Sequence record: MK774614.2
Direction: 5' to 3' (one strand)
DNA length: 64,000 bases
The notes under the pieces: model-generated
Told to the model about the DNA's origin: nothing
Seen by the model: the letters and a program-made list of their open reading frames with translations, nothing else
Databases searched by the model: none
Position numbers and translations under genes: made by a program
In this document: one piece after another, positions 7,567-58,813 of the stretch
How the letters are laid out: the number at the start of each line of letters is the position of its first letter
Position numbering within the stretch: position 1 is the stretch's first letter

Positions 7567-9295
7567 TAAGACCCCGCGAACATCGTCGCTAGGTCGGGTT
7601 GTTCCTGGGGCAGGTCCCCAGGTTCCCAACAGTGACGAACGCAAAGTTGTTCATTATCTCGATCAAATTTTTGACCCCGATATTCATGACCCGGCAGACA
7701 TTGCCAAATATGTGATTCCTCAGGAAAGGGAAATCGTTATCGATGTTCCTGCTAAGAAGTTTCTTGAGGTAAAACACGTCGATAAATACGGGACGTGGAA
7801 ATCCACCTTGGAGGAGTGGGATCCTATCAGTGCAGAAGGGGATGCGGACTACGTTCTCTTTCCAAAGCACGAATATGGATTCTTGCAAGGTGAACTCGCG
7901 TTAGCCATTGATTACAGTGTTCGCCCCCCAGTTGCTCGAGTAGACAGTAATGCCATCGCTCCTGATGCTGCATATGCATTGCTCTACAAAGGCAACCTGA
8001 TCGGTGAGAAAGGGGAAATCATCTCTTCTCGTTATAGCGGTCAGGAGTTAGTGGATAACAAGATCTCTGTCTCGCCCGTGGTGTTTGATAACCTTGAAAA
8101 TCGCACTGTGATGGGTTGTGATACGTTCTCGGTCAATGTCAATGAAAATGACATGCCAAACGGGACTCGAGCCACGCTGGTTTTTTATGATGTCAATGGT
8201 CGTCCAATCCCACCGACCTATTCGGTAGCGACACAACACTGCGCTTACCTAAGGGATCATCAGTTGGGACAGCGTTATGTGAAATCCATTGAACTGATTA
8301 GTCCGTGGTTTACAAACGCGGTTTTACCCAATACCTTGTTTGTTCCCATTAACGTTGCATTGAAAACCATTGAGTTTCGAGCAAAGGTACATTACTCGGA
8401 TGGGTCTTCTTCTGATGAACTCCCAGTCAATACCTTTAATGGAAACAACGGGTTTAGTTTGTCAGGGATTGATCAGTACAAACCGACGGTTCCTGGACAA
8501 ACCAGCGATGCATTGGTACTGACTTATGCGTTTAAAGAACACGAGCAAGCGTACATCGTTCAACCGGGTGCTCCGCGTCATATTTCCGAACAGTTCACCA
8601 TTGTTGCCACGGCTGCTGAAGGGGCTTATTCGCCGCGTATTTATACTTATCCTTATTGGGATCCTACTGCTGGGTGGAAGTTACGTCATTATCTTACTGA
8701 TCTTGATCGTCGGTTCTGCCGTGATGTCACCGACGTGGTAACGTTGAATGAATCGTCCCCTGCATTTGATGGCCGTCGTTATGGTTCTGAACAGAACCTG
8801 ACCTTTAACCTGAACATGCGGGATGTCAGTGCGAATTATGAGCCATGGGCGTTTATTCAAAACACCTCCATTACGCTTTATAATGACGCAACGGTGGAAG
8901 GGCGTAAGTGGGATGTCCGTCACTCTTACGGCAAGCCTGCGTTCTCTGCACTGAGTTTGGAATTCAGTACACAGGTCGGTGGGATTACCTCTGGTAAGTT
9001 TGCAGGTGTGACTGACGTAGCAAGTTTCCTTGAGAAAGGGTATTATGCGTTTGAACCGATGATTGATCCTCGCACTGAGGCAAATCCCTTGGTTCCGACG
9101 CACTTCGATCTGTTGCGCACCAATAACACAGCACGAACTGGTATTCCAGTGGGTGATTTTGGTAACCTTCCTATTACCGATCTTTCATTGGTCAACGGTG
9201 AAGGTTTCTATGTCCGTTGGGTACGTCGTGAAGCAAACGGGAATGAACTCCAGTTGGGTGTTTCTGCTGGTGTGTGTAAGAAAGTGATTGTTTAA
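7559..9295 (+). CDS. Virion structural protein (phiKZ gp26-like position)
   Basis: ATG 7559 with GAGG upstream overlaps the previous gene's end; followed by a terminator; synteny. Confidence 0.55.
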   Translation: MFDKTPRTSSLGRVVPGAGPQVPNSDERKVVHYLDQIFDPDIHDPADIAKYVIPQEREIVIDVPAKKFLEVKHVDKYGTWKSTLEEWDPISAEGDADYVLFPKHEYGFLQGELALAIDYSVRPPVARVDSNAIAPDAAYALLYKGNLIGEKGEIISSRYSGQELVDNKISVSPVVFDNLENRTVMGCDTFSVNVNENDMPNGTRATLVFYDVNGRPIPPTYSVATQHCAYLRDHQLGQRYVKSIELISPWFTNAVLPNTLFVPINVALKTIEFRAKVHYSDGSSSDELPVNTFNGNNGFSLSGIDQYKPTVPGQTSDALVLTYAFKEHEQAYIVQPGAPRHISEQFTIVATAAEGAYSPRIYTYPYWDPTAGWKLRHYLTDLDRRFCRDVTDVVTLNESSPAFDGRRYGSEQNLTFNLNMRDVSANYEPWAFIQNTSITLYNDATVEGRKWDVRHSYGKPAFSALSLEFSTQVGGITSGKFAGVTDVASFLEKGYYAFEPMIDPRTEANPLVPTHFDLLRTNNTARTGIPVGDFGNLPITDLSLVNGEGFYVRWVRREANGNELQLGVSAGVCKKVIV

Positions 9296-9305
9296 TGGCC
9301 TTAAA

Positions 9306-9337
9306 GCTAAGTAACCCGCAAGGGTTACTTAGCTTTT
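9306..9337 (+). terminator. Intrinsic terminator
   Basis: Perfect 12-bp stem GCTAAGTAACCC/GGGTTACTTAGC, GCAA loop, followed by TTTT. Confidence 0.8.
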
Positions 9338-9399
9338 ATTCTAATAAATACGCGAGTATAAATAATCTGTTTATAACCAATAACCTAAGGGCTAATAAA

Positions 9400-9747
9400 A
9401 TGAACGTCTCTATTGATTTGACTACAATCGAAAAACTGTTTAGTGCTGAAGATAAAGAACCGCTAAGAACACATTTAATTGAAACACTGCTCGTTAACGG
9501 TCTCAGGGTAAAGGATCATCCACTTGTAAGAACCTTTCTAAACCGCGGGGCTTCTGATAGTTCAAAAGAAGTTTATGAAAAGGAGCGTTTGATTTATACC
9601 AAAGCTATTCTCATTCCTGTTAAAGACTTGAACGTGGATCAATGCAAAATTCCATTGGCTTTGACCTACGAGCACTTTGATCAGTTTTCTTTAACTGATA
9701 TTAAGAACATTATTAAATACGCCCACAAGACCTGTTTTGGTTTTTGA
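9400..9747 (+). CDS. Hypothetical protein
   Basis: The track ORF starts at 9295 but crosses the terminator; ATG 9400 has AAGGG upstream. Confidence 0.6.
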   Translation: MNVSIDLTTIEKLFSAEDKEPLRTHLIETLLVNGLRVKDHPLVRTFLNRGASDSSKEVYEKERLIYTKAILIPVKDLNVDQCKIPLALTYEHFDQFSLTDIKNIIKYAHKTCFGF

Positions 9748-9756
9748 TACCCATAA

Positions 9757-9783
9757 TTTTACAAGCAGATATTATTAACATGA
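9757..9783 (+). promoter_or_regulatory. Early-type phage promoter
   Basis: TTTTACAAGCAGATATTATTAACATG matches the motif repeated upstream of many genes in the window; resembles the phiKZ early TATATTAC element. Confidence 0.65.
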
Positions 9784-9804
9784 CACAATTATGGGGGTAT
9801 TTCT

Positions 9805-10199
9805 ATGTCTGATAACCTCATTGTTAACACTACGTTTAAACGAATTAAATCATCTAACCTGGAACGTAAACGTTAGCTGAACTGCTTTACAAAAGTTTAA
9901 AGGCAAATGGTGATCACGTCCCCAATAAATTACGTTCTGCCATTCAAATGTTAGCTGACTCAATGTTGGACAACACGCGTGATATGTTTGTGCTTTATGA
10001 ACCATATTGGCGGATTATCAGCGTTGAAAATTACACCGGTAAACAAGAAGATTTGCGGGAATGTACACTTTCTCTTTTACTAGGCAACGGAACAGTCACT
10101 AACAAACAGATTATCTTGCTGATAGCCACACTGCTCTCAATCAGTTTTGAAGATAAGCTGGTCGATCTTGTTGATCATGAATTACACTATTTGATTTAA
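9805..10199 (+). pseudogene. Frameshifted hypothetical gene (or single-base sequencing error)
   Basis: ATG 9805 (GGGGG upstream, promoter in front) stops at TAG 9874-9876. The -1 frame is open from 9870 into the 9948..10199 ORF. Adding one A at cgtAAAcg gives one ~131 aa protein. Confidence 0.6.
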
Positions 10200-18661: not shown

Positions 18662-19510
18662 TTATTTTCTACGTGGAACTAGCATCCTCAGCGAGTCCGA
18701 AACCCCTTTAGGATCTGCATAAGCAAGATAACGTTGAATTTCTTCTTCGAAGAACTCTCTGAATTGTACACCAGCGTCACGATACTCATTAACTTCTTCT
18801 CGTATCTCGTCAATAGAGACACCAAAACGTGCAACAGCTTCTTGCATCCCGCGCCGACAGGTTTTATAGATATAAGCCTTTACGCCCAATTCAACCAGTT
18901 TTGCCATCTGGAAATAAGATTTTGGAGGTATTGTGCTAAAGTGTTCATCATAACTTAGAACAACCTTTGCCACCATGTTGAACATAGCGGATCCAGCATC
19001 ACGGATTAAGAACGTGTTATTCCCTACCATAGTAAAATGAGTGTAAACACGTTGGACTTGTCCGTTATCTAATCCTTGCATTAACCGGTTCATGGCATTG
19101 CCCATCTCACCGCCACCATTACAAGTCTCATAAGAACTGAAGTTATAACCAGCTGCAACAGCACGATTAATGTTTCCAGGATAAACTTCTAAGACACTTA
19201 GGATTTTTCTTCCACCTGTTAGGAAATCAGGAACGTTAACGTGAATAGTCCCGCCAGAAAGGCTCTTTATATGTGCGCCACTGAGATCTATAATTTCCGT
19301 ATTTCCTGAGGCTGCATTAAAAAGAGGGTTAATCATTTTAGCAATGACCTTTTCTCTAATCCCTTGTTCAATACTGTATTCAGTATTTTGATCACCCCAG
19401 ACAAACCCCGTGCCGTTGTTTGGATTATCAAAGGCAAGCTTTAATAAATAGTCACTGATGTCGGAAGTTCCTTCGACAACATATGAGATGCAAAAATCAA
19501 CCATGTTCAT
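18662..19510 (-). CDS. Conserved phiKZ-like virion-associated protein
   Basis: 282 aa, AAGGA RBS, co-directional with 17174..18652. Confidence 0.5.
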   Translation of the reverse strand: MNMVDFCISYVVEGTSDISDYLLKLAFDNPNNGTGFVWGDQNTEYSIEQGIREKVIAKMINPLFNAASGNTEIIDLSGAHIKSLSGGTIHVNVPDFLTGGRKILSVLEVYPGNINRAVAAGYNFSSYETCNGGGEMGNAMNRLMQGLDNGQVQRVYTHFTMVGNNTFLIRDAGSAMFNMVAKVVLSYDEHFSTIPPKSYFQMAKLVELGVKAYIYKTCRRGMQEAVARFGVSIDEIREEVNEYRDAGVQFREFFEEEIQRYLAYADPKGVSDSLRMLVPRRK

Positions 19511-19562
19511 GATTGTTTCCTTTTAATGAAGTTTGGTACAAAAGATCGACCAGCAAACATAA

Positions 19563-19597
19563 CCCCTACCCAAGCCCCATGAAGGACCTGGGTAGGG
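19563..19597 (-). terminator. Hairpin ending the tRNA-region transcript
   Basis: CCCTACCCA...TGGGTAGGG stem; on the minus strand it ends GGGTAGGGGTT, the same motif that ends the elements at 23514 and 27890. Confidence 0.5.
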
Positions 19598-19619
19598 AAT
19601 ACATCATAATTAATGTCCT

Positions 19620-20047
19620 TCCCACTGCTCCCATCAATACGATATCTCGTGGCCTTTGAGATAACATAAAGAAAGAAACAGTAGGCTGAGCACTAAAGCA
19701 CAACTTCCAAAGCGACCAGCCTTGGCGGACTGTTTACCGTTAATCATTGTTTGGTCTGGCGACTGGAGGGAATGTAATCCCTAGACCTGCCCTCAGGCAT
19801 TCTTTTCTGCAGCGCAACAAAGATCACGATATTCAAGCGCCTTGAATAACAAGGTCACTTTTTGGTTACAGTTAAACCAAATATAATAGTGAAAGTTAAC
19901 GCACCAGCGCCCAGCGCAAGTATCGTTAAATACCTTTCACACCCAGCTGGAATCAACCAGCGAGATTGGGAATCCTTCTATCTGTAGACAGCTAAATACA
20001 ATTTGTGCTAAAGAGACAAAGCGAATCAAGAAGGCACAAATAGAAGG
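19620..20047 (-). ncRNA. Candidate structured non-coding RNA downstream of tRNA-CAU
   Basis: No ORF of 60 aa or more; nested stems (19889-19901 with 19924-19940; 19830-19837 with 19841-19848; 19974-19980 with 20041-20047). Confidence 0.4.
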
Positions 20048-20052
20048 AAAGG

Positions 20053-20130
20053 TGGTGGTCCCTGGAGGATTCAAACCTACCGACATCTCGATTATGAGTC
20101 AAGAGCTCTAATCAACTGAGCTAAGGGACC
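20053..20130 (-). tRNA. tRNA with CAU anticodon (closest to Ile2, lysidine type; Met possible)
   Basis: GGTCCCT/AGGGACC acceptor, GCTC/GAGC D-stem, CT-CAT-AA loop, encoded ACCA. Resembles E. coli ileX. Has A19/T56 and a one-base T-stem bulge. Confidence 0.9.
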
Positions 20131-20139
20131 TGGGTTAGG

Positions 20140-20498
20140 TTTTGGATCTACTCTATGTCGTCATGGTAACTATGGAGTTCCATCGTGTTTGTTTACAACA
20201 AATTAACCCAATTCGAGTCGGGGATGCGCAGCTGTCGTAAACGTTGAGTGTGACAAAGTCGTGAGTCAGATCCAAAAAGGTTATTGAGTTAACTAAGTTG
20301 CCCACTAAGACCTAACACACAACGATACAACATTGAGGATTGGTTAAAGTCTTAGCTAACTCAAATAAGGAGGAATTTCCTCTCTAAAACAGGGGATGTT
20401 TGTGCCATGGGAGCGAGAGAGGAAACTCCGAAAAGGGCCGAGAACGGAATCATAAGTTTCACCAAGTCTTTTTTATGACTTACTTATGTCCGTCTCGG
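20140..20498 (-). ncRNA. Candidate structured RNA between the two tRNAs
   Basis: Four long back-to-back hairpins; two mismatches become G-U pairs only on the minus strand. Confidence 0.5.
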
Positions 20499-20534
20499 GG
20501 GTTCTGTACCAAACAGGTTTGATATAGAAGCAAG

Positions 20535-20619
20535 TGGTCCACGAGGCGGGAGTCTAACCCGCATGTCCTAAGACGGCGTGTTTTAAGCACGCTCTGTATA
20601 ACTATTCCAGCACTCGTGG
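20535..20619 (-). tRNA. tRNA-Leu (UAA)
   Basis: CCACGAG/CTCGTGG acceptor, GCGTG-CT-TAA-AA-CACGC anticodon arm, long variable arm, A73, encoded CCA. Has T19/A56. Confidence 0.92.
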
Positions 20620-20872
20620 GAATTTCGTTACATACCATTCTAATACAGTATGTTTAAATAGATCCAGATCCGAAGACCTGGAAGGTTTCTAAACACAACA
20701 TACAACTTTAACCTGCATGGAGAGTGGACCGACCATAATCGGTTCTTTACTCATTAGGTGGTAAAAGTGATTTGTGTTAAAGAATAGACGGGATCCTTGA
20801 GTCAAAAGGAAGATCTAGCTGACATGCCCAGTCAATGCTAAACCAAGTAAAACCACAAGGATCCCTAAACTG

Positions 20873-21450
20873 TCTTTTTAATCATCACTCGTTGAATAAG
20901 GATTAAAAAGAGCCAGACGCAATGCCACACCTGGCTTATTCTAAACATAAAATAAAAGGCTAAGAAAATGAAAAGAAAACTATAGCAAATTTGAAGGGCA
21001 TTACCGCGATGTAAGAACCTTCCTAATAGACACTTAATAAATATCCATTAGGAAGGTGGGAGAGTCGAGCCTCTCTCCCAACTTAATCTACTTCGTAAGG
21101 AAAACAACAATGAATCGCAACAGGTTACGCTTCTTAATAAGCTCTGAACAAGAACACATTAAGAAGTGCACATCGGTAGCGAAAGGATGCACACTTTATC
21201 TTAGTTAGGAGATGACAATGGCAATTAAGCAATGAAAGAGACGAACTAAGGCGGAGCACGTGACTTTCTTAATAGATACTCAATTGAAAATACCTATTAA
21301 GAAAGTGAGAGTTAGGGAGACTCTCACAGTATATTACCAGGAGTTAAAGTAATGCAACCTACTTTAGAAACAAAGCTCAGCGGAAAGCACCGTTTCTCAA
21401 TACACACTATTGGAAAATGTTTATTGAGAAAGTAAGCAGTCTGTGACATA
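20873..21450. repeat. Tandem array of five diverged multi-hairpin units (~110-145 nt period)
   Basis: Each unit begins with a YTTYyyAAT-N19-22-ATTrrRAAr inverted repeat (20873, 21018, 21130, 21263, 21393). In units 1-4 it is followed by a second hairpin and an RBS-like AGG plus ATG. Confidence 0.75.
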
Positions 21451-21463
21451 CAATAGTTAAGTT

Positions 21464-21495
21464 CCATAATTTTTCAAGTAGATATTATCAAGATG
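21464..21495 (+). promoter_or_regulatory. Early-type phage promoter heading the accessory region
   Basis: CCATAATTTTTCAAGTAGATATTATCAAGATG. Related copies at ~9757, 28321, 30290, 33551, 38902, 45844, 48233, 50425, 54121, 58768, 63929. Confidence 0.75.
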
Positions 21496-21558
21496 ATAAC
21501 TTGGGAAAAGGTTATCCATTGAAACACTGTTTACACTATTTTAGCAAGGGGCTAAATC

Positions 21559-22191
21559 ATGGAATTCCTCAGTATTGAAAAACTCATTAAATATTCGCTT
21601 CAACATGTCTTTGAAAAGATTGAAGTGAAGCCGTTGGTAGTAGATACTAATTTGATCAACAAACATCGACTGGAAAGTTTCCCTCATCGGAATATAAAGG
21701 CAGTTTCATTCTTTTTGGATGACTCTGTTCGCTACATCATGTTCTACATGGATGTTCGAGGAGAAACACTCTTTACAAGGCCAAAGTCTGGGATCTTAAT
21801 TAAACTGACCCAGGAGCTTCGTAGCAGTGATTTTCGAAATACCTTGACAGAAGACTTCACTGAGTATGAAAGTGTCATGGGAATATTCCTGGAACACTAC
21901 ATCAATCAAAAAGCAGAAGAAGATATCCGAATCTTTTTGGAACGGTTGGTAACTCGTCAAAAAGAGAAAACAGGCAAAGAACATAAATACACCACAGGGT
22001 ACCACGTCATCAAACACAATAAAGAAACGATGGACTATCAAGCGATCTTTGAAGTGTTTGTCAAATCACCTGATCAAGGGGATGACGAGTTTGTAGGATA
22101 CTCCGGGGAGATCAGTTCCGGTGTTCCTGCGACGTTTGTCAATCGCCAAAAAGATGGGATGAAAACAACCTTGATGGACGTTTTCTCCTAA
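21559..22191 (+). CDS. Hypothetical protein
   Basis: 210 aa, AAGGGG RBS, downstream of an early promoter. Confidence 0.7.
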   Translation: MEFLSIEKLIKYSLQHVFEKIEVKPLVVDTNLINKHRLESFPHRNIKAVSFFLDDSVRYIMFYMDVRGETLFTRPKSGILIKLTQELRSSDFRNTLTEDFTEYESVMGIFLEHYINQKAEEDIRIFLERLVTRQKEKTGKEHKYTTGYHVIKHNKETMDYQAIFEVFVKSPDQGDDEFVGYSGEISSGVPATFVNRQKDGMKTTLMDVFS

Positions 22192-24109: not shown

Positions 24110-24634
24110 ATGAGGTCTTCTTTTCAATTTGGGGTAGTGCGGGATGTTGCTCATCTTAAAACACTGATGGGGTTGTTACATCGTCCAGTTTACACATTTG
24201 AAAAACATAATCGATTTCATGAGTTTATGGCGGGACGTAAAGTCAGGGCAATGGTGATGAAAGGGTTTTATATTCAATTTCATCACTGTGTTCGCCAGGG
24301 TAAGAAATGGATCGATATCAGTTACTCTGTTCGGGAAGGGAATTTGAGTTACTTTATTGGTTCATTTGAATTTATGCGTTATTCTACAAAAGCACACATT
24401 GTTAAGTTCATTACTCAGCAAATGTTGGGGATTATGTTCGATAGGATGCTCTTACAGAACGTTGTGGTGTACGAAGGTGAAAACGTACTGGCTAAGATCA
24501 AGAATGCGAATACGAGCCTTGAGAGAGCATTCTGGGACGCAGTTAGAAATAAACTCAAAAAACAGTTTATGGGAATCAAATCAGGATCGGAAAGTGATCT
24601 TCTTTACTTGCGATCCATTCCAGTTCAATTTTAA
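24110..24634 (+). CDS. Hypothetical protein
   Basis: 174 aa, GAGG RBS. Confidence 0.7.
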   Translation: MRSSFQFGVVRDVAHLKTLMGLLHRPVYTFEKHNRFHEFMAGRKVRAMVMKGFYIQFHHCVRQGKKWIDISYSVREGNLSYFIGSFEFMRYSTKAHIVKFITQQMLGIMFDRMLLQNVVVYEGENVLAKIKNANTSLERAFWDAVRNKLKKQFMGIKSGSESDLLYLRSIPVQF

Positions 24635-27458: not shown

Positions 27459-27900
27459 TATATTATATGTAATTGGTTTCATTTCTCGATTGATGAATTC
27501 ACTTTTCTGATGATTTTCTTCTTTTTATTTCACCTTATTCATTATTAAAAAATAATGTTTATGGGGGAATAAAAAGGGGGCCATCAGTCAAGCGGGGTCC
27601 ATCAGTCAAGAGCGGGTCCAATTACTCCAGTCCAATTAAGAGTCGGGTGAAACCCAATTATACTTAATTAAAAGTGAAATGAGATATATGGATAAGGATA
27701 AGGTTATGAACGAAGTGAGTAACATCCTTTATTCCATATAGCGAATGAACTCCAGTTGAATTGGCTTTAAGAAAATTCAATTACAAGAAAAGTAAATACA
27801 GAAATAAGAAAACAGAAATGAATTAGAAATTAGAGTAAACTAGACAATTAAAATACTTAACTATCTGCTTAGAGGGAGTACCTCTAGGTGGGTAGGGGTT
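27459..27900 (+). ncRNA. ORF-free element B with internal direct repeats (ncRNA or origin candidate)
   Basis: Starts TATATTATATGT, ends GGGTAGGGGTT; CCATCAGTCAAG x2 and CCAATTA x3; motifs shared with element A. Confidence 0.4.
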
Positions 27901-28388: not shown

Positions 28389-28955
28389 ATGGAAAGTTAC
28401 TACGTTGAAGACATGACGTTTAAACAAGCTAGGACGCTTTGTGGGGTGTTGTTCCATAAGACAAGCAAATCTACGTTGGTAAGTGAGAAAGGTGATGTAG
28501 AGCTTCTGACGAAGGCTGAGGAAGGGTTTGATCATCTCCTTGGGAATAGTCGATTTGTTTATACCCAAACCCCCAGTGAACATAACCAACCTTTTGGGAT
28601 CACGTGGTGTTGTGGCCTGTCTGGTGACGATAATCGAACACTGATGCTTCAGTGCGGGGAAGAAACAGTTGACGATCTGGATGTCAAACTTGTTAGCAAT
28701 TTAGAAAAACTGTTTAATCCTGCTTGTCGAAGCCAGTCTATTCGATTCGAGCACAATGGTGGTGTTTGGGAGCTGGTTGTTCTGCAAAACTTTAGATCAA
28801 CGCAATATCTATTAAGAAGGGAATTGGTGAAACCAACTGGAATGGCTAACTACTTCCCTGTGTTTGAATATGAACAAGTTGATAAGTTTCCTAGATTTTA
28901 TTCTGTCATCGAACAGTTTAAACAACAGTTAGTGGATTTTTATACACCAGAATAA
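28389..28955 (+). CDS. Hypothetical protein
   Basis: 188 aa, AAGGA RBS, promoter-like GATATTATTACCGTG at ~28327. Confidence 0.7.
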   Translation: MESYYVEDMTFKQARTLCGVLFHKTSKSTLVSEKGDVELLTKAEEGFDHLLGNSRFVYTQTPSEHNQPFGITWCCGLSGDDNRTLMLQCGEETVDDLDVKLVSNLEKLFNPACRSQSIRFEHNGGVWELVVLQNFRSTQYLLRRELVKPTGMANYFPVFEYEQVDKFPRFYSVIEQFKQQLVDFYTPE

Positions 28956-28971
28956 CAAAAGGACTAAGAAA

Positions 28972-29580
28972 ATGGAAATTACTGCAAATGCAATTAAGAA
29001 TAACATCCAAGCTATTTATGAAGGAATTGAAAAGTGCCGAGTGGCTTATAAAAGTCACTCTGTGCTAGGTCAACTTTACAATGTCGATTTGGGGATATGT
29101 ACTATTGGACTTTCTAATTCGGCCATTAACCACACTTTGTTTGTTACACCATCTGTGAATGGATTAAATAAAGGATCCATTGGGTTTTCAGAAACAGAGG
29201 TTCAAGAAGACACTATCAGTATTGAAGAGTATGGATTAGTGTTGGACAACTTTATTGGTTCCATGATTGCGGGAATTAGTCAGGTTGCGTATACGCAATG
29301 GAGAGACGAAGTTCAGTTAGTTGATGTCTTGACAAGCAAATCGTACCAAGCACTCTCAGAACTCTTTCCAGAAGTGTTTGGGATGGTGTTGGATCCCGCT
29401 GTCCATGGATATGATATTCGTATTGTTGATGCGAATGGAGAACTTCTTTATCACAGTGCAGGTGAATGCGAAGCACTTGCTCACTTGGATTGGGATCGAC
29501 TGGAAATGGAAATCAAACTTGCTTGGCTCTTTATGTACAATCAAGGATTAGGTTTTCAAGACCGTGTTGTTAATATCTAA
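28972..29580 (+). CDS. Hypothetical protein
   Basis: 202 aa, AAGGA RBS. Confidence 0.7.
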   Translation: MEITANAIKNNIQAIYEGIEKCRVAYKSHSVLGQLYNVDLGICTIGLSNSAINHTLFVTPSVNGLNKGSIGFSETEVQEDTISIEEYGLVLDNFIGSMIAGISQVAYTQWRDEVQLVDVLTSKSYQALSELFPEVFGMVLDPAVHGYDIRIVDANGELLYHSAGECEALAHLDWDRLEMEIKLAWLFMYNQGLGFQDRVVNI

Positions 29581-46988: not shown

Positions 46989-48086
46989 TTATACATGATC
47001 TTTCAAATCTTTCCATACATTAATATAGAAGCTTGCCCAATAGGGATCTTTAATCTGGTTACTGTTATAGTTAACTGGAATTTTGTAAAAGGTCTTTAAT
47101 TTTGAGGTGGTAATGGGGTCGTAAGAACCCATGAAGTCCATAAAGTAAAGATACCCTTTTGCCCAATGAAGCGAAGCCAGTGTGTAGACCCAACCTAATT
47201 GAACAAACATCATCGATTGCTGTCGGTGCGAAAATACCATATCAGAAAGGTTTAGTGATCTAAAGCTACTAGCAGATAACTTCAGCCACTCATTAGGCGA
47301 CTTGATTCGTTCCCCTAACAACTGTTTGCGAATCCAGCTGTTGTACTCATTTTGTTGGAAGCTATATTGCTCTAACGCAAACCCAGAACGCTGAACAGTG
47401 ACGTCATCACCTTCTGCAATTAGGTTTAGGTTCACCAGTGCATTGTGCCAAACATAAGTATCTAATAAACAGAGCAAGACATAATGATGAGGTGTTAATC
47501 CGACATTAACATTATTCTCGATACGTTCTTTTAAATACCAGTAATAACCAAACACAAACTGATACACATCCAGTTCTAGAACGGTGAAGGTTTGTTCTTC
47601 CCCAACTCGTTGAACTGTATCAATAAGGTGATCTAAATTCCAGTAATGAGTTTTACTGGTGGTCATGATCGGTTTTAAACACACTCGACCTAAAGACAAT
47701 GTTTCAGTTACATTATCTTGATCGAATTCGGGTTTTTCAAACGGCATGACAATCAAGGTACGGTGATTACTTTCTGGGTACACACTTTCAGCGTGATCTT
47801 TCCCTCTATTGTAAAGAGAAGTGATCCCAACGTTACTGGCTATTTTTTTACTCTGCAGTTCAATATAGTTGTACAGCTCAGCAGGTGTCCAATTAATGTT
47901 AATGGACAATTGCAGTAAAAACTGTACCAATGGATGTTGGTTTGGAAGAACTCTGTTACCCATCGCGTAAAACGTTTTAAAGCGTTCTACATTACGTTCA
48001 TGGATGGCTTGGAGATTATCAAGTTTTCCGTATCGCGGTAAACTGGGATTTGGGGTTCCACCAGGACTTAATTGAAATTGATTCAT
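46989..48086 (-). CDS. Conserved phiKZ-like protein (gp52-like position), divergent from chimallin
   Basis: 365 aa, AGGA RBS; synteny. Confidence 0.6.
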   Translation of the reverse strand: MNQFQLSPGGTPNPSLPRYGKLDNLQAIHERNVERFKTFYAMGNRVLPNQHPLVQFLLQLSININWTPAELYNYIELQSKKIASNVGITSLYNRGKDHAESVYPESNHRTLIVMPFEKPEFDQDNVTETLSLGRVCLKPIMTTSKTHYWNLDHLIDTVQRVGEEQTFTVLELDVYQFVFGYYWYLKERIENNVNVGLTPHHYVLLCLLDTYVWHNALVNLNLIAEGDDVTVQRSGFALEQYSFQQNEYNSWIRKQLLGERIKSPNEWLKLSASSFRSLNLSDMVFSHRQQSMMFVQLGWVYTLASLHWAKGYLYFMDFMGSYDPITTSKLKTFYKIPVNYNSNQIKDPYWASFYINVWKDLKDHV

Positions 48087-48227
48087 TGTTGTTTCCTAGT
48101 TATTTATTTTTCTACCCACATTTACTATTATATGTAAACAACTAACTAATCTTCGGATTAGTTAGCAAGCGGTAGATGTACGTCATTTGTAAGTTATCCA
48201 AACGATTTACCTCAAAAATTGAAGGTC

Positions 48228-48332: not shown

Positions 48333-50336
48333 ATGATTAATACCAATGATACTCCAGAGTCGCAATCTGGGCATCAACTGGGCGAAAGTACGTTTGGGCA
48401 AGCTAATCCTCAACCTACTCCCGATGCGCCGTTTAATTCTCAAACCACTGAAAACAATACTTCTTCTCAACAAAAGGAAACTGTAACCATGTCCAATTCC
48501 GTTAACGCTCTGACCGCACTGCTGGGCCTGCACAACATCACCGCTTCCCAACATCAGATCCCCGAAATCGACGCTGTGATCAAAGATCTGGATGAGCGTG
48601 TCAAGAACCTGCGTATGAACACTGCTGCAGAAGCTCAGAAAGCCACTCTGCCCAAAGCGGTTCAGACTCTGTCTACCGAGATCTCTCCGCAGCTGCCGGG
48701 TATCGCCGTTTACACCGTGATCGGTAAATCCGTTTACGTCATGCCGGTTCTGTTCTTCAAGAATGGCATCACTGATGCAACTGACACTGTTCAGCTCCAA
48801 AACGAAGCCCCGCGTGGCTTTGCTAAGGTACCGAACAGCTTCATGACCAAAGAGATCCTGGGTCGTGTCAAACAAGCCTTTGCTTATGTTGACAGCGTCA
48901 AGATGGAAGAAGTCTTCATCCTGTCCCAGACTGTGGTCAACCTGGAACGTTACATCAAGAACGATATCACCGGTGACGATCTGATCCGCACTGTGGTTAA
49001 CCGTCTGATGGACGAGTGGGGTATCGGTCTGCTGAGCCTGGGTACCATGCTGGCTGTTAAAGCAAACATGACCCTGCCGTCTCCGTTCAAGAACGGTAAA
49101 CTGTTCGGTGAGCATGACGCTGCGATTGCGCGTATCGAAGCGATGAGCAAGTTTGTTCAAAACGGTTCCCCGACTCCGTACAACCTGTCTGTGAAACTGG
49201 CCACCACTAACCGTAACCAAAACGGTTATAACCAAAACCAGAACAACAGCAAGTCTGTGATCACCACCAACCTGAACGTTCAGCTGGAAATGATGAGCCC
49301 GCAGCAGTTCCAACAGCATCGCATGGCCCGTACGGGTGCGGTAGGTGTTGGTCCGCTGGTGCCGGTTGTTTCTATCGGTAACTCCATCCCAGGTGAAACC
49401 CTGAACCACAACTCCAGCCCGATCGCTGCTATCCTGGGTCTGTACGCTGCGCTGTCTGCGAACGGTCAAGCAACTCTGGCTGAAGCTTATCGTGGTAAGG
49501 AAGTGGGTAACCGTGGTAACCTGAGCGTGTTCAACCACTCTCTGGCTGCGATGATGCCGGGTGCTTACGGTGCGGACAAGTTCCTGACCGATAAGAACAT
49601 CATGAACATCGCAGTGGTCAGCTCCTGGATCCAAACTTACGTTTCTACCAATCCGGTATATGTCATGGATGTAGCGGCTAACCTGGAAAACTCCAGCACT
49701 TCCGAGTTCTGGTTTGGTGTGGCCTCTAAGGACTCCACCTCTCCGTACTACCGTGCCGTGGTGGCTGCAATGAACGTCCTGTCCAACGGTAAGTTCAGTG
49801 AACTGGCTAACCAGAACGCTAGCGAAGCCGGTCGTGACAAGACCAAGCAGTGGGTACTGGGTGATCCGATCGTGCATCAAACTCGTGTACTGCGACCGCG
49901 TGGTATCGCACAAGCCAAAGACGGCAAGTGGTTTGATCTGGGTGAGATCGATGCAATGTTCCTGCGCCAGCCGGAATACTACGGTCAAAACGAACAGGCT
50001 ATTGCCGAGTTCATGGGTCTGATCCAAGGCTCCATGGGTGGTGACGTTCGTGTCCGTCAGTTCAACATCATCTCTCGTCTGCAAGCACTGACCAACAACA
50101 CCGCTCAGGTAGAAGGTTGGGATCTGCGTCTGATCGTTGGTAACAGCTTTGCCAACACCATGGCACAAGCAATGGTTGCTGCCGGTACTATCTCTGTATC
50201 TGCTTCTAACTACAACGGTCAGTGGACCCATCAGGTCGACAACGAAGTGCTGAACATGCTCATGACTGCAACTCTGGCTCCTCAGAACCAGAACGCCTCT
50301 CTGGGTCTGTCTAGCATGTTCCTTGGTGGCATGTAA
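48333..50336 (+). CDS. chmA: Chimallin, phage nuclear shell protein (phiKZ gp54-like)
   Basis: 667 aa (615 from the second start at 48489); disordered Q/T/S/N N-tail; very strong C-ending codon bias; located between the gp52-like gene and nvRNAP beta-prime N, as in all Chimalliviridae I know. Confidence 0.88.
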   Translation: MINTNDTPESQSGHQLGESTFGQANPQPTPDAPFNSQTTENNTSSQQKETVTMSNSVNALTALLGLHNITASQHQIPEIDAVIKDLDERVKNLRMNTAAEAQKATLPKAVQTLSTEISPQLPGIAVYTVIGKSVYVMPVLFFKNGITDATDTVQLQNEAPRGFAKVPNSFMTKEILGRVKQAFAYVDSVKMEEVFILSQTVVNLERYIKNDITGDDLIRTVVNRLMDEWGIGLLSLGTMLAVKANMTLPSPFKNGKLFGEHDAAIARIEAMSKFVQNGSPTPYNLSVKLATTNRNQNGYNQNQNNSKSVITTNLNVQLEMMSPQQFQQHRMARTGAVGVGPLVPVVSIGNSIPGETLNHNSSPIAAILGLYAALSANGQATLAEAYRGKEVGNRGNLSVFNHSLAAMMPGAYGADKFLTDKNIMNIAVVSSWIQTYVSTNPVYVMDVAANLENSSTSEFWFGVASKDSTSPYYRAVVAAMNVLSNGKFSELANQNASEAGRDKTKQWVLGDPIVHQTRVLRPRGIAQAKDGKWFDLGEIDAMFLRQPEYYGQNEQAIAEFMGLIQGSMGGDVRVRQFNIISRLQALTNNTAQVEGWDLRLIVGNSFANTMAQAMVAAGTISVSASNYNGQWTHQVDNEVLNMLMTATLAPQNQNASLGLSSMFLGGM

Positions 50337-58696: not shown

Positions 58697-58813
58697 TTGA
58701 TCTATTTCGTATAAAAGCTCAGAAGGGGAATCCCTTCTGAGCTCTATTATTTTTGCTGCTCCATAAATTTTGAAGTAGATATTATCTACAGGTATATACA
58801 CAGGAGAATTATT

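Follow-up and report, generated by a model that had tools for sequence, protein, structure and literature searches.

The 64,000-nucleotide (nt) window analyzed here, which comprises bases 1–64000 of the 238,150-bp genome of Aeromonas phage CF8 (MK774614.2, identical coordinates), contains an array of five hairpin modules, which was delimited by folding and alignment as a structured non-coding RNA of about 0.8 kb with five modules and a 3' domain on the minus strand (20655..21456, predicted ends). According to the reading favored here, which is drawn from sequence comparison and held with about even confidence, the array may represent a co-transcribed chain of csRNA-like antisense modules on one minus-strand RNA of this size. 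Phage CF8 is an OBP/phiKZ-like jumbo phage of the genus Chaoshanvirus, and it was placed in the OBP-like branch of the nucleus-forming jumbo phages because homologues of its gp13 were found in Pseudomonas phages OBP and EL as well as in many other phiKZ-like jumbo phages. The array sits in a 2-kb gap without protein-coding genes (19511–21558), bordered on the left by the minus-strand virion genes gp12 and gp13 and on the right by the plus-strand gene gp14. Directly downstream of the array RNA and on the same strand is the gene for tRNA-Leu (UAA) (20535..20619, minus strand; ARAGORN and the GenBank annotation), followed by that for a tRNA with the anticodon CAU (20053..20130, minus strand), which was assigned to Met by ARAGORN and Rfam and to tRNA-Ile2 in GenBank. 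The predicted RNA would thus be made directly upstream of both tRNAs and on their strand.

The original prediction for this stretch described five inverted repeats, and all five were found with perfect arms, namely, at 20873 (unit 1, arms of 11 nt, gap of 17 nt), 21017 (unit 2, 11 and 19 nt), 21130 (unit 3, 9 and 19 nt), 21263 (unit 4, 13 and 18 nt), and 21393 (unit 5, 10 and 19 nt). The possibility raised there that similar repeats arise often in shuffled sequence was not borne out: in 1000 dinucleotide-preserving shuffles of 20850–21460, searched for perfect arms of at least 9 nt with a gap of 15–24 nt, the mean number of such repeats was 0.021 and the maximum one, compared with the five observed. 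The arms were said to diverge between units while remaining complementary, and this was found to reflect compensatory change across 36 units of 12 phages. Second hairpins were indeed present in units 1–4 (GCCAG/CTGGC, TGGGAGAG/CTCTCCCA, GTGCA/TGCAC, and GTGAGAGT/ACTCTCAC, respectively), and the (C/T)ACT shared by the loops is real, being the complement of a conserved AGUG/AGUA of the other strand. Two points of that account had to be corrected. All features had been described on the plus strand, whereas the strand that folds is the minus strand, and the supposed loops of 19–22 nt are mostly paired on it, which results in stems of 16–20 bp with loops of 3–9 nt. The account had also passed over the same-strand tRNA genes and the conservation across genera.

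The minus-strand RNA of 20620–21460 had a folding energy of −255.6 kcal/mol (z = −11.1), 43 kcal/mol better than that of the plus strand (−212 kcal/mol, z = −5.3), and every single unit was more stable on the minus strand, by 3–9 kcal/mol. In the alignment of the long A+U hairpin (H1) of the 36 units, standard pairs were found in 92.4% of cells and changes on both sides in 15 of the 19 pairs; compensatory cells numbered 135 versus 43 in shuffles, and controls with a slid partner paired in 45–52%. It should be noted that the H1 units were first collected via a perfect 8-nt inverted repeat, so that the covariation figures for the outer stem are partly circular, which has to be set against the reading; the inner eight pairs, which lie outside this selection, were paired in about 87%. 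At two inner positions, U·G was the commonest pair (17/36 and 21/36), and at least 71 inner-stem cells were G·U or U·G, each of which becomes A·C if read as the plus strand. Three base pairs of H1 were invariant (36/36), while their neighbors covaried. A covariance model built from the H1 alignment (R1) scored the five CF8 units at 35.6–53.4 bits on the minus strand versus 22.7–32.9 bits on the plus strand, approximately 13–21 bits higher on the minus strand for each. An alignment of the whole RNA of CF8 with its counterparts in phages ZPAH34 and AerS_266 had 85% column identity, and RNAalifold predicted 241 pairs on the minus strand of this three-phage alignment, 28 of them with compensatory changes. 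The broken pairs of this alignment that were checked by eye (unit 2 H1, unit 2 H2, and the long-range helix described below) were all A·C on the plus strand and are therefore G·U on the minus strand. No conserved tertiary or kissing-loop pairing of at least 6 bp was found among the unpaired columns. By this modeling, the five repeats were confirmed as minus-strand RNA hairpins, both tRNA genes being on that strand as well.

The same data bear on the possibility that the repeats act as DNA, as cruciform-prone or dimer-binding sites of an origin, partition, or packaging element at the divergent boundary. Such a role, to which A+T-rich repeats at an orientation switch and, in relatives, only a few kb from the terminase gene would be suited, is hardly credible, since the arms differ between units, U·G occurs on one strand only, the short second stems and the long-range helix covary like RNA, and the GC skew follows gene orientation. 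The DNA dimer-binding sites offered as the third alternative of the original prediction are likewise contradicted by the strand-asymmetric U·G and by the differing arms, and iterons or centromere-like repeats were rejected on these two grounds. The search for a replication origin by GC skew was uninformative, as the skew just tracks gene orientation.

Read in the direction of the RNA (21456 to 20655), H1 has the consensus 5'-YUUYYUWAWR..UAUUU-loop-AAGUG..YWUWARRAAR-3' with stems of 16–20 bp, while the second hairpin (H2) is short and G+C-rich (6–11 bp), with a variable, covarying sequence and in some cases a loop of 11–14 nt. H2 and H1 are spaced by 0–1 nt in nearly all units, which gives a quasi-continuous helix of 25–30 bp and two-hairpin modules 60–78 nt long; between the modules lie linkers of 45–80 nt, which are pyrimidine-rich, largely unpaired, and conserved at the sequence level. 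The U-rich tract after H2 also serves as 5' arm for the H1 that comes next, in which it is base-paired, and the five modules are therefore chained head to tail. First in the RNA is the H1 of unit 5 (21391..21434; with R1, 35.6 bits on the minus and 22.7 bits on the plus strand; also a helix in RNAalifold), the only CF8 unit without a preceding H2. Linker 5-4 (21328..21390), which carries CAUUACUUUAACUCC (21354–21340), leads to unit 4, with its H2 at 21305..21327 (GUGAGAGU/ACUCUCAC and then UUUCUUAAU, a terminator-like match with three compensatory pairs among three phages) and its H1 at 21263..21307 (51.0 and 31.3 bits; a 17-bp helix with U·G). Linker 4-3 (21194..21262; mean probability of being unpaired 0.74) carries CAUUGUCAUCUCC (21220–21208) and is followed by the H2 (21165..21195, invariant in sequence in the three Chaoshanviruses) and the H1 of unit 3 (21128..21169; 43.1 and 29.6 bits). 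Linker 3-2 (21081..21129; mean probability of being unpaired 0.67) contains at 21116–21097 the sequence AUUCAUUGUUGUUUUCCUU, complementary to the start of the gene at 46989–48086. Unit 2 consists of an H2 at 21057..21080 (UGGGAGAG/CUCUCCCA), in which G-C was replaced by A-U and A-U by G-C and for which ZPAH34 shows an intermediate that is G·U solely when read on the minus strand, and an H1 at 21017..21058 (53.4 and 32.9 bits; an 18-bp helix). Linker 2-1 (20937..21016) carries CAUCGCGGUAAUGCCCUU and UUUCUUUUCAUUUUCUUAGCC, and its UUUCUUUUCAU is kept in CF8, PS1, and AhC3_1. In unit 1, H2 (20911..20936; GCCAGG../..CUGGC and then CUUUUUAAU, a terminator-like match) changes from GCCAG/CUGGC to GCCAAA/UUUGGC in relatives, and H1 occupies 20872..20913 (45.5 and 27.7 bits). 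The 3' domain (20689..20865) contains a 14-bp long-range helix (20865–20852/20803–20790) around nested hairpins, in which GGGAUC changes to GGAGUC with G·U on the minus strand only, and a second domain (20779–20689). A terminator-like hairpin (20663..20683), with UUCG as its loop and a U-rich tail, lies approximately 45 nt before tRNA-Leu, with a further hairpin in between. All these elements are on the minus strand.

Since H2 runs directly into the U-rich 5' arm of H1, the two together resemble an intrinsic terminator, and two of the four H2 with their U tracts (units 1 and 4) passed the terminator scan; on the minus strand of the gap, 11 terminator-like sites were found versus 2.0 expected. 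These sites would suit a cis-acting leader of the tRNA operon, working by put-like antitermination, by graded attenuation at H2 and its U tract, or by RNase III/E processing or stabilization of the tRNA precursor, as would the position of the array, always upstream of same-strand tRNAs and apparently promoter-proximal, and the size of the module, two adjacent stem-loops of about 65–78 nt, near that of put RNA. In phage HK022, putL and putR are about 70 nt long, form two stem-loops, and lie just downstream of the promoter (PMC9378689). However, put occurs once per operon and binds the host RNA polymerase, whereas the array has 3–7 copies per phage. Phages of the phiKZ type use their own RNA polymerases. 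A leader role is rather improbable, given that five to seven copies and a 180-nt 3' domain exceed the need of a put-like element, that a terminator-like hairpin separates the array from tRNA-Leu in CF8, that the linkers are conserved in sequence, and that phage AH04 retains a tRNA without a detectable array.

The linkers contain the sites that had been noticed on the plus strand as AGG followed by ATG (20968, 21110, 21212/21218, and 21352); these were confirmed, including their opening of only 5–32 codons, and are indistinguishable from the real translation-start regions of CF8. Read on the RNA strand, the same sites have the form 5'-CAU-N(4-10)-CUCC/UCCU/CCUU-3', an anti-start codon and then an anti-Shine–Dalgarno (anti-SD) sequence, and are located 12–20 nt upstream of H2. 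This pattern occurred 29 times in 13 arrays versus 9.5 ± 3.2 in dinucleotide shuffles (maximum 21), whereas the pattern of opposite sense occurred 5 times versus 7.0 expected; when one phage per lineage was counted, 17 sites were found versus about 5.7. In the structural ensemble of the CF8 RNA, the mean probability of being unpaired was 0.42–0.74 for these seeds.

It was considered that the plus strand might itself be functional, as a leader or decoy with genuine ribosome-binding-site mini-ORFs (open reading frames), one of which copies the start of the candidate target gene gpX and which would titrate ribosomes or a translational repressor. The likeness of the sites to real starts, the 15–19-nt identity with gpX in the sense orientation, which by sequence alone could reflect a decoy or shared recognition, and a motif of the gpX upstream region that stands in plus orientation at both array ends in Chaoshanvirus are in its favor. 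The plus strand, however, folds worse, about a quarter of the inner-stem pairs become A·C on it, and the mini-ORFs are not conserved; in AhC3_1 and PS1, there is nothing obvious to drive plus-strand transcription, since only one motif copy is present, next to the promoter on the gp14 side. A functional plus strand is therefore quite improbable. The sense decoys for CsrA or an RNase toxin suggested originally did not hold either, as the plus strand folds worse, the loops are without recurrent GGA, and the repeats are not identical. Small plus-strand proteins were ruled out: the mini-ORFs span 1–32 codons with frameshifts between close relatives, no conserved peptide was found in any comparison, and in the longest mini-ORF, CF8 and ZPAH34 differ by five substitutions, each of which alters the amino acid, with 83 of 88 nucleotides invariant.

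The favored antisense reading is modeled on the csRNAs, the cia-dependent small RNAs of streptococci, in which an unpaired anti-SD/anti-AUG region lies between two stem-loops and whose presumed action is to block translation initiation (PMC3091779). As in the csRNAs, two stem-loops flank an unpaired region with CAU and an anti-SD sequence, and several related copies are present per genome; because the module layout is the csRNA layout, the element was read as several such modules chained on a single transcript. In contrast to the array, with its five fused phage modules, the csRNAs are separate genes of a Gram-positive host, each with its own promoter and terminator; moreover, the 5' hairpin of the array is a long A+U helix with a U·G motif, and its U tract is the arm of the next hairpin. 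Homology to csRNAs was not detected, since Rfam gave no match beyond tRNA in 19400–21700 (E ≤ 10). The LhrC1-5 small RNAs of Listeria are also multicopy and bind the start regions of their targets with redundant CU-rich motifs (PMC4132741). Those motifs are copies of one sequence, whereas each linker of the array differs, as do host and architecture. By analogy, the closest functional counterparts of the element are small RNAs with anti-SD/anti-AUG stretches, and its niche is that of the large phage RNAs beside tRNA islands.

A module comprises H1, the largely unpaired linker as a putative seed, and H2 with its U-rich tract. In the proposed mechanism, each linker would act as an antisense seed for the ribosome-binding region of mRNAs of the phage (or the host), and pairing there would block or modulate the initiation of translation. 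The hairpins would stabilize the RNA and present the seeds and might also be termination or processing points that free small RNAs; both an RNA acting as a whole and one cut or terminated into pieces of 100–150 nt were considered.

The linker with the best candidate target is linker 3-2. An exact-match search of the arrays against all start regions was performed in the complete genomes of CF8 and ZPAH34. For the RNA locus of ZPAH34, the longest run of identity anywhere else in that genome spans 19 nt and lies at the start of gpX, the next best being 15 nt; gpX of ZPAH34 (OM810292, 216741–217835) is a virion structural gene and the orthologue of the CF8 gene at 46989..48086 (minus strand), which encodes a virion structural protein of 365 amino acids (phrog_14481) and whose start region (48098–48080) matches linker 3-2. 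In CF8, the two longest matches were 16 nt (start of GroEL) and 15 nt (start of gpX; 17 nt with G·U), and both gpX matches, in CF8 and in ZPAH34, fall in linker 3-2. The matching sequence is AGGAAA(A)CAACAAUGAAUC in CF8 and AAGGAUUUGACAAUGAAUC in ZPAH34, with SD-to-AUG spacers AAACAAC and TTTGAC, respectively; the spacer has therefore changed in step in the linker and in the gene. Only 0.3–0.5% of 368 control start regions reached such run lengths against the same RNAs, and the cognate linker–gpX duplexes had energies of −23.6 and −29.0 kcal/mol. From this, we infer that linker 3-2 targets the start region of gpX in Chaoshanvirus.

In AerS_266 and in a metagenomic relative, gpX lies between the chimallin gene and the DNA polymerase gene. 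On the metagenomic contig with the gpX homologue, the array would lie outside the 10-kb flank. In CF8, an ORF of 667 amino acids (48333–50336, plus strand) is divergent from gpX and syntenic with the chimallin-Pfam gene of AerS_266 and of a European Nucleotide Archive contig; it had no Pfam match at E ≤ 0.001.

Several results weigh against the antisense reading. The evidence for targeting concerns one linker in one genus: in AerS_266, the linker–gpX pair matches at 17 of 19 positions with two A·C mismatches, and in AhC3_1 and PS1, the longest complementary runs with gpX were 9 and 8 nt, within the background. When whole linkers are considered, gpX does not stand out in CF8 by its duplex energy. 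No conserved partner was found for linker 2-1, and the CAU of linker 5-4 is changed to CAA in ZPAH34 and AerS_266. GroEL was rejected as a target, as the 16 nt (AAGGAAAACAACAATG) that it shares at CF8 188733–188748 with linker 3-2 are not shared in ZPAH34 or AerS_266; gp18 (24110) was rejected as well, its match to linker 5-4 being within the background and not conserved in ZPAH34. In general, the linkers resemble real starts no more than real starts resemble each other. The first-suspected promoter, of a TATG type, showed no enrichment upstream of genes. Finally, antisense action leaves the invariant H1 pairs and the U·G motif unexplained, which suggests a protein partner or a processing enzyme. 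With regard to the original alternatives, that of antisense RNAs against translation starts is the favored one, although its plus strand was wrong and the targets it named are unsupported: the likeness of the array to the gene starts at 24110 and 28972 is present but does not exceed the start-versus-start background of the phage.

A protein partner is the essence of another explanation, in which the repeated H1 would be multivalent sites for the host RNase III, another binder of double-stranded RNA, or a phage protein, and the RNA would titrate or assemble the bound protein according to the logic of CsrB/RsmZ with a different motif. It accounts for the three invariant H1 pairs (36/36) and for the two U·G positions kept amid covarying neighbors, and it agrees with the 3–7 copies per phage, the quasi-continuous H2–H1 helix, and the single locus. 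However, the neighbors gp14 and gp15 have no recognizable RNA-binding domains in Pfam and PHROG, and the enrichment of anti-start/anti-SD sites and the co-varying gpX match are left unexplained. The H1 and H2 loops carry no recurrent GGA, and the RNA is therefore not a Csr/Rsm sponge. On balance, a protein scaffold or sponge is unlikely.

Returning to the antisense reading, it can be extended, with more doubt than conviction and on sequence grounds, to the proposal that OBP-like nucleus-forming phages encode a multiplexed antisense RNA, a single transcript of 3–7 modules whose distinct seeds would each be held between protective hairpins, and at least one of these seeds would be tuned to a conserved virion gene beside the chimallin gene. 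Little work exists on RNA-based regulation in nucleus-forming jumbo phages, in whose transcriptomes small RNAs have been seen, one of them upstream of a tRNA. If the array is antisense, it would offer a handle on how the translation of virion genes is tuned after mRNA export from the phage nucleus, as well as a natural model for building compact regulatory RNAs with several seeds; if it is multiplexed in the sense proposed, it would be an undescribed means by which a phage times or balances how its own or host mRNAs are translated in the cytoplasm. Should the antisense reading be wrong, an unclassified, strongly covarying RNA family of the type of large RNAs next to phage tRNAs would still remain, like the functionally unexplained GOLLD and ROOL.

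The covariance model was run on related phages, as the original prediction had proposed, and homologous arrays were found; R1 recovered ten units absent from its own seed. Tandem arrays of 3–7 units with a period of 100–180 nt (110–145 nt in CF8) were present in ZPAH34 and AerS_266 (Chaoshanvirus, 5 units), AhC3_1 (genus not assigned, 4 units), PS1, pAEv1810, and AVP1 (Ferozepurvirus, 4 units), D6 (Ludhianavirus, 3 units), OBP (Petsuvirus, at least 6–7 units), Yubaba (Petsuvirus, 5 units), pEt-SU (Petsuvirus, 3 units), N1M2 (Nimduovirus, 5 units), and SXP01 (genus not assigned, at least 5 units). In every case, the units read in the sense of the tRNAs and lie in the stretch that separates a divergent early-promoter region from the tRNA cluster adjoining the gp13 homologue. 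Members of at least six genera thus share the array, and it changes more slowly in evolution than the adjacent protein genes: among Chaoshanviruses, protein identity was about 75% for gp13 and only 38–42% for gp14, and the non-coding region was 82–85% identical. The longest array was that of OBP (IMG/VR copy, 8197–9957), with four strong units at 9454–9957 and two or three weaker ones; one isolated unit of OBP adjoins the first tRNA. The gp13 homologues of EL, Miami, and phiKT1028 had neither an array nor tRNAs beside them, and in AH04 the tRNA is kept while the array is not detectable. The five units are the only R1 matches in the complete 238-kb CF8 genome, and the array is therefore not a generic terminator or promoter element. 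In IMG/VR, no further relatives were found by the gp13 search, and the arm-pattern search returned only OBP and unrelated single palindromes; the 54 unrelated loci with the arm pattern were isolated palindromes without arrays.

Searches with Rfam 15 (E ≤ 10) in 19400–21700 returned tRNAs only, as they did in 12 related loci, and no published description of such an array was found in literature searches, in agreement with the earlier statement that no element with this layout has been described. A divergent tRNA, a tmRNA, or any other Rfam family was excluded by the lack of a match, ARAGORN and RF00005 giving nothing in 20620–21560. By sequence comparison, the element appears to be a new, unclassified RNA family, so far found only in OBP-like jumbo phages. 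The absence of identical direct repeats and of cas genes had been pointed out correctly, and a CRISPR array was rejected because the units share about 58% column identity, no direct repeats are identical, and the annotation shows no cas gene within ±5 kb. An RNA similar to ToxI of type III toxin–antitoxin systems was also rejected (period of 110–145 nt versus 34–40 nt, diverged repeats, and no adjacent toxin-like gene).

The array shares its niche with GOLLD and ROOL, large structured RNAs of phages and prophages that are often found beside tRNA islands (10.1101/2024.12.08.627333), being itself a structured phage RNA of about 0.8 kb directly upstream of tRNA-Leu. The repeated modules might accordingly build a higher-order particle as a self-assembling RNA of this kind, for which the common niche, the similar size (10.1101/2024.12.08.627333), and the extensive covarying structure speak. 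Neither the GOLLD nor the ROOL covariance model gave a match even at E ≤ 10, however, no conserved tertiary pairing was seen, and the array is a string of simple tandem hairpins rather than of multi-way junctions and pseudoknots, so that this explanation is very improbable. In jumbo phage 201phi2-1 (and PAK_P3), a small RNA derived from a 5' untranslated region and ending just upstream of a tRNA was recorded by ONT-cappable-seq (PMC11512511). The 201phi2-1 RNA is single, and the phage stands outside the array-carrying clade. The RNAs C and D of phage T4 are small, stable, non-coding RNAs that are encoded and processed with the phage tRNAs; they are single and not composed of repeated modules.

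At the 5' end of the array RNA, a flanking motif was found at 21441..21456 (plus strand CTGTGACATACAATAG; RNA strand CUAUUGUAUGUCACAG), which on the RNA strand is the reverse complement of a motif upstream of gpX. The latter, a 13–16-nt sequence of the form TTGT(T)TACATATAATAG, is conserved in six lineages, in which it immediately follows a terminator hairpin and precedes gpX by about 45 nt. Written as TTGT(T)TACATA(T/C)AATAG, it is rare (3–5 copies per genome; the gpX copy of CF8 is at 48125–48140 on the minus strand). A copy between the early promoter of gp14 and the first H1 has the plus-strand sequence ACATACAATAG in CF8, ZPAH34, and AerS_266, and ACATATAATAA in AhC3_1 and PS1, where it is the single copy and lies on the gp14-promoter side; Chaoshanviruses have a second flanking copy just before tRNA-Leu (20625–20640, plus strand). 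The motif could be a promoter class common to gpX and gp14 and unrelated to the RNA, or it could be a further pairing site for the gpX leader, in which case the T/C difference would give U·G. Another copy, at 27461–27472 (minus strand), comes before TTTAAGAAAATGG and a hairpin. The idea of TATG-type promoters at 21447 and 20631 found no support, as the 13-mer is not over-represented and the copy at 20631 lies within a conserved hairpin.

The RNA is bounded, on its outside, by an early-promoter-like motif for the divergent gp14 (21462..21489, plus strand). This 28-nt motif (TTCCATAATTTTTCAAGTAGATATTATC) occurs again at 58759–58786 (plus strand) and probably represents an early promoter class. 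When a 941-nt query was used, 10 places in the CF8 record matched parts of it, and other Aeromonas, Serratia, and Klebsiella jumbo phages matched it only at the 28-nt motif. The words most enriched upstream of genes were the hexamers TAGATA, GATATT, and ATATTA.

As regards the remaining start regions, the gene at 28972 was rejected as a target, its match being within the background and without a counterpart in ZPAH34. An identical 24-nt start region, AATAACAAAAGGACTAAGAAAATG, is present in two unrelated CF8 genes (window 28948–28974 and genome 73706–73732, both on the plus strand), and, solely in CF8, linker 2-1 is complementary to this region, matching 17 of 18 positions with one indel. The ranking of targets by whole-linker duplex energy was abandoned as too noisy, since cross-genome controls scored alike. 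The longest strings common to CF8 linkers and CF8 starts were 10–16 nt, and those of foreign linkers 7–12 nt.

No Pfam or PHROG family match was obtained for gp14, gp15, gp17, and gp18. The gene gp14 (21559–22191, plus strand) is fast-evolving (27–42% identity), and its position beside the array is kept in AVP1, pEt-SU, AhC3_1, OBP, and Yubaba. The rest of the gap (19511–20052 and 20131–20534) comprises about 0.9 kb more and gave no ORF, tRNA, or Rfam matches; it contains an inverted repeat, TTCCTCTCT-N30-AGAGAGGAA, at 20377, and its counterpart in relatives holds tRNA-Asn/Asp and a weak tRNA match. Just upstream of gp13, a strong 16-bp hairpin followed by TTATGTTTG (19563–19598, minus strand) is kept in PS1, AVP1, Yubaba, and SXP01 and is probably the end of the tRNA transcription unit together with a late-type promoter for gp13.

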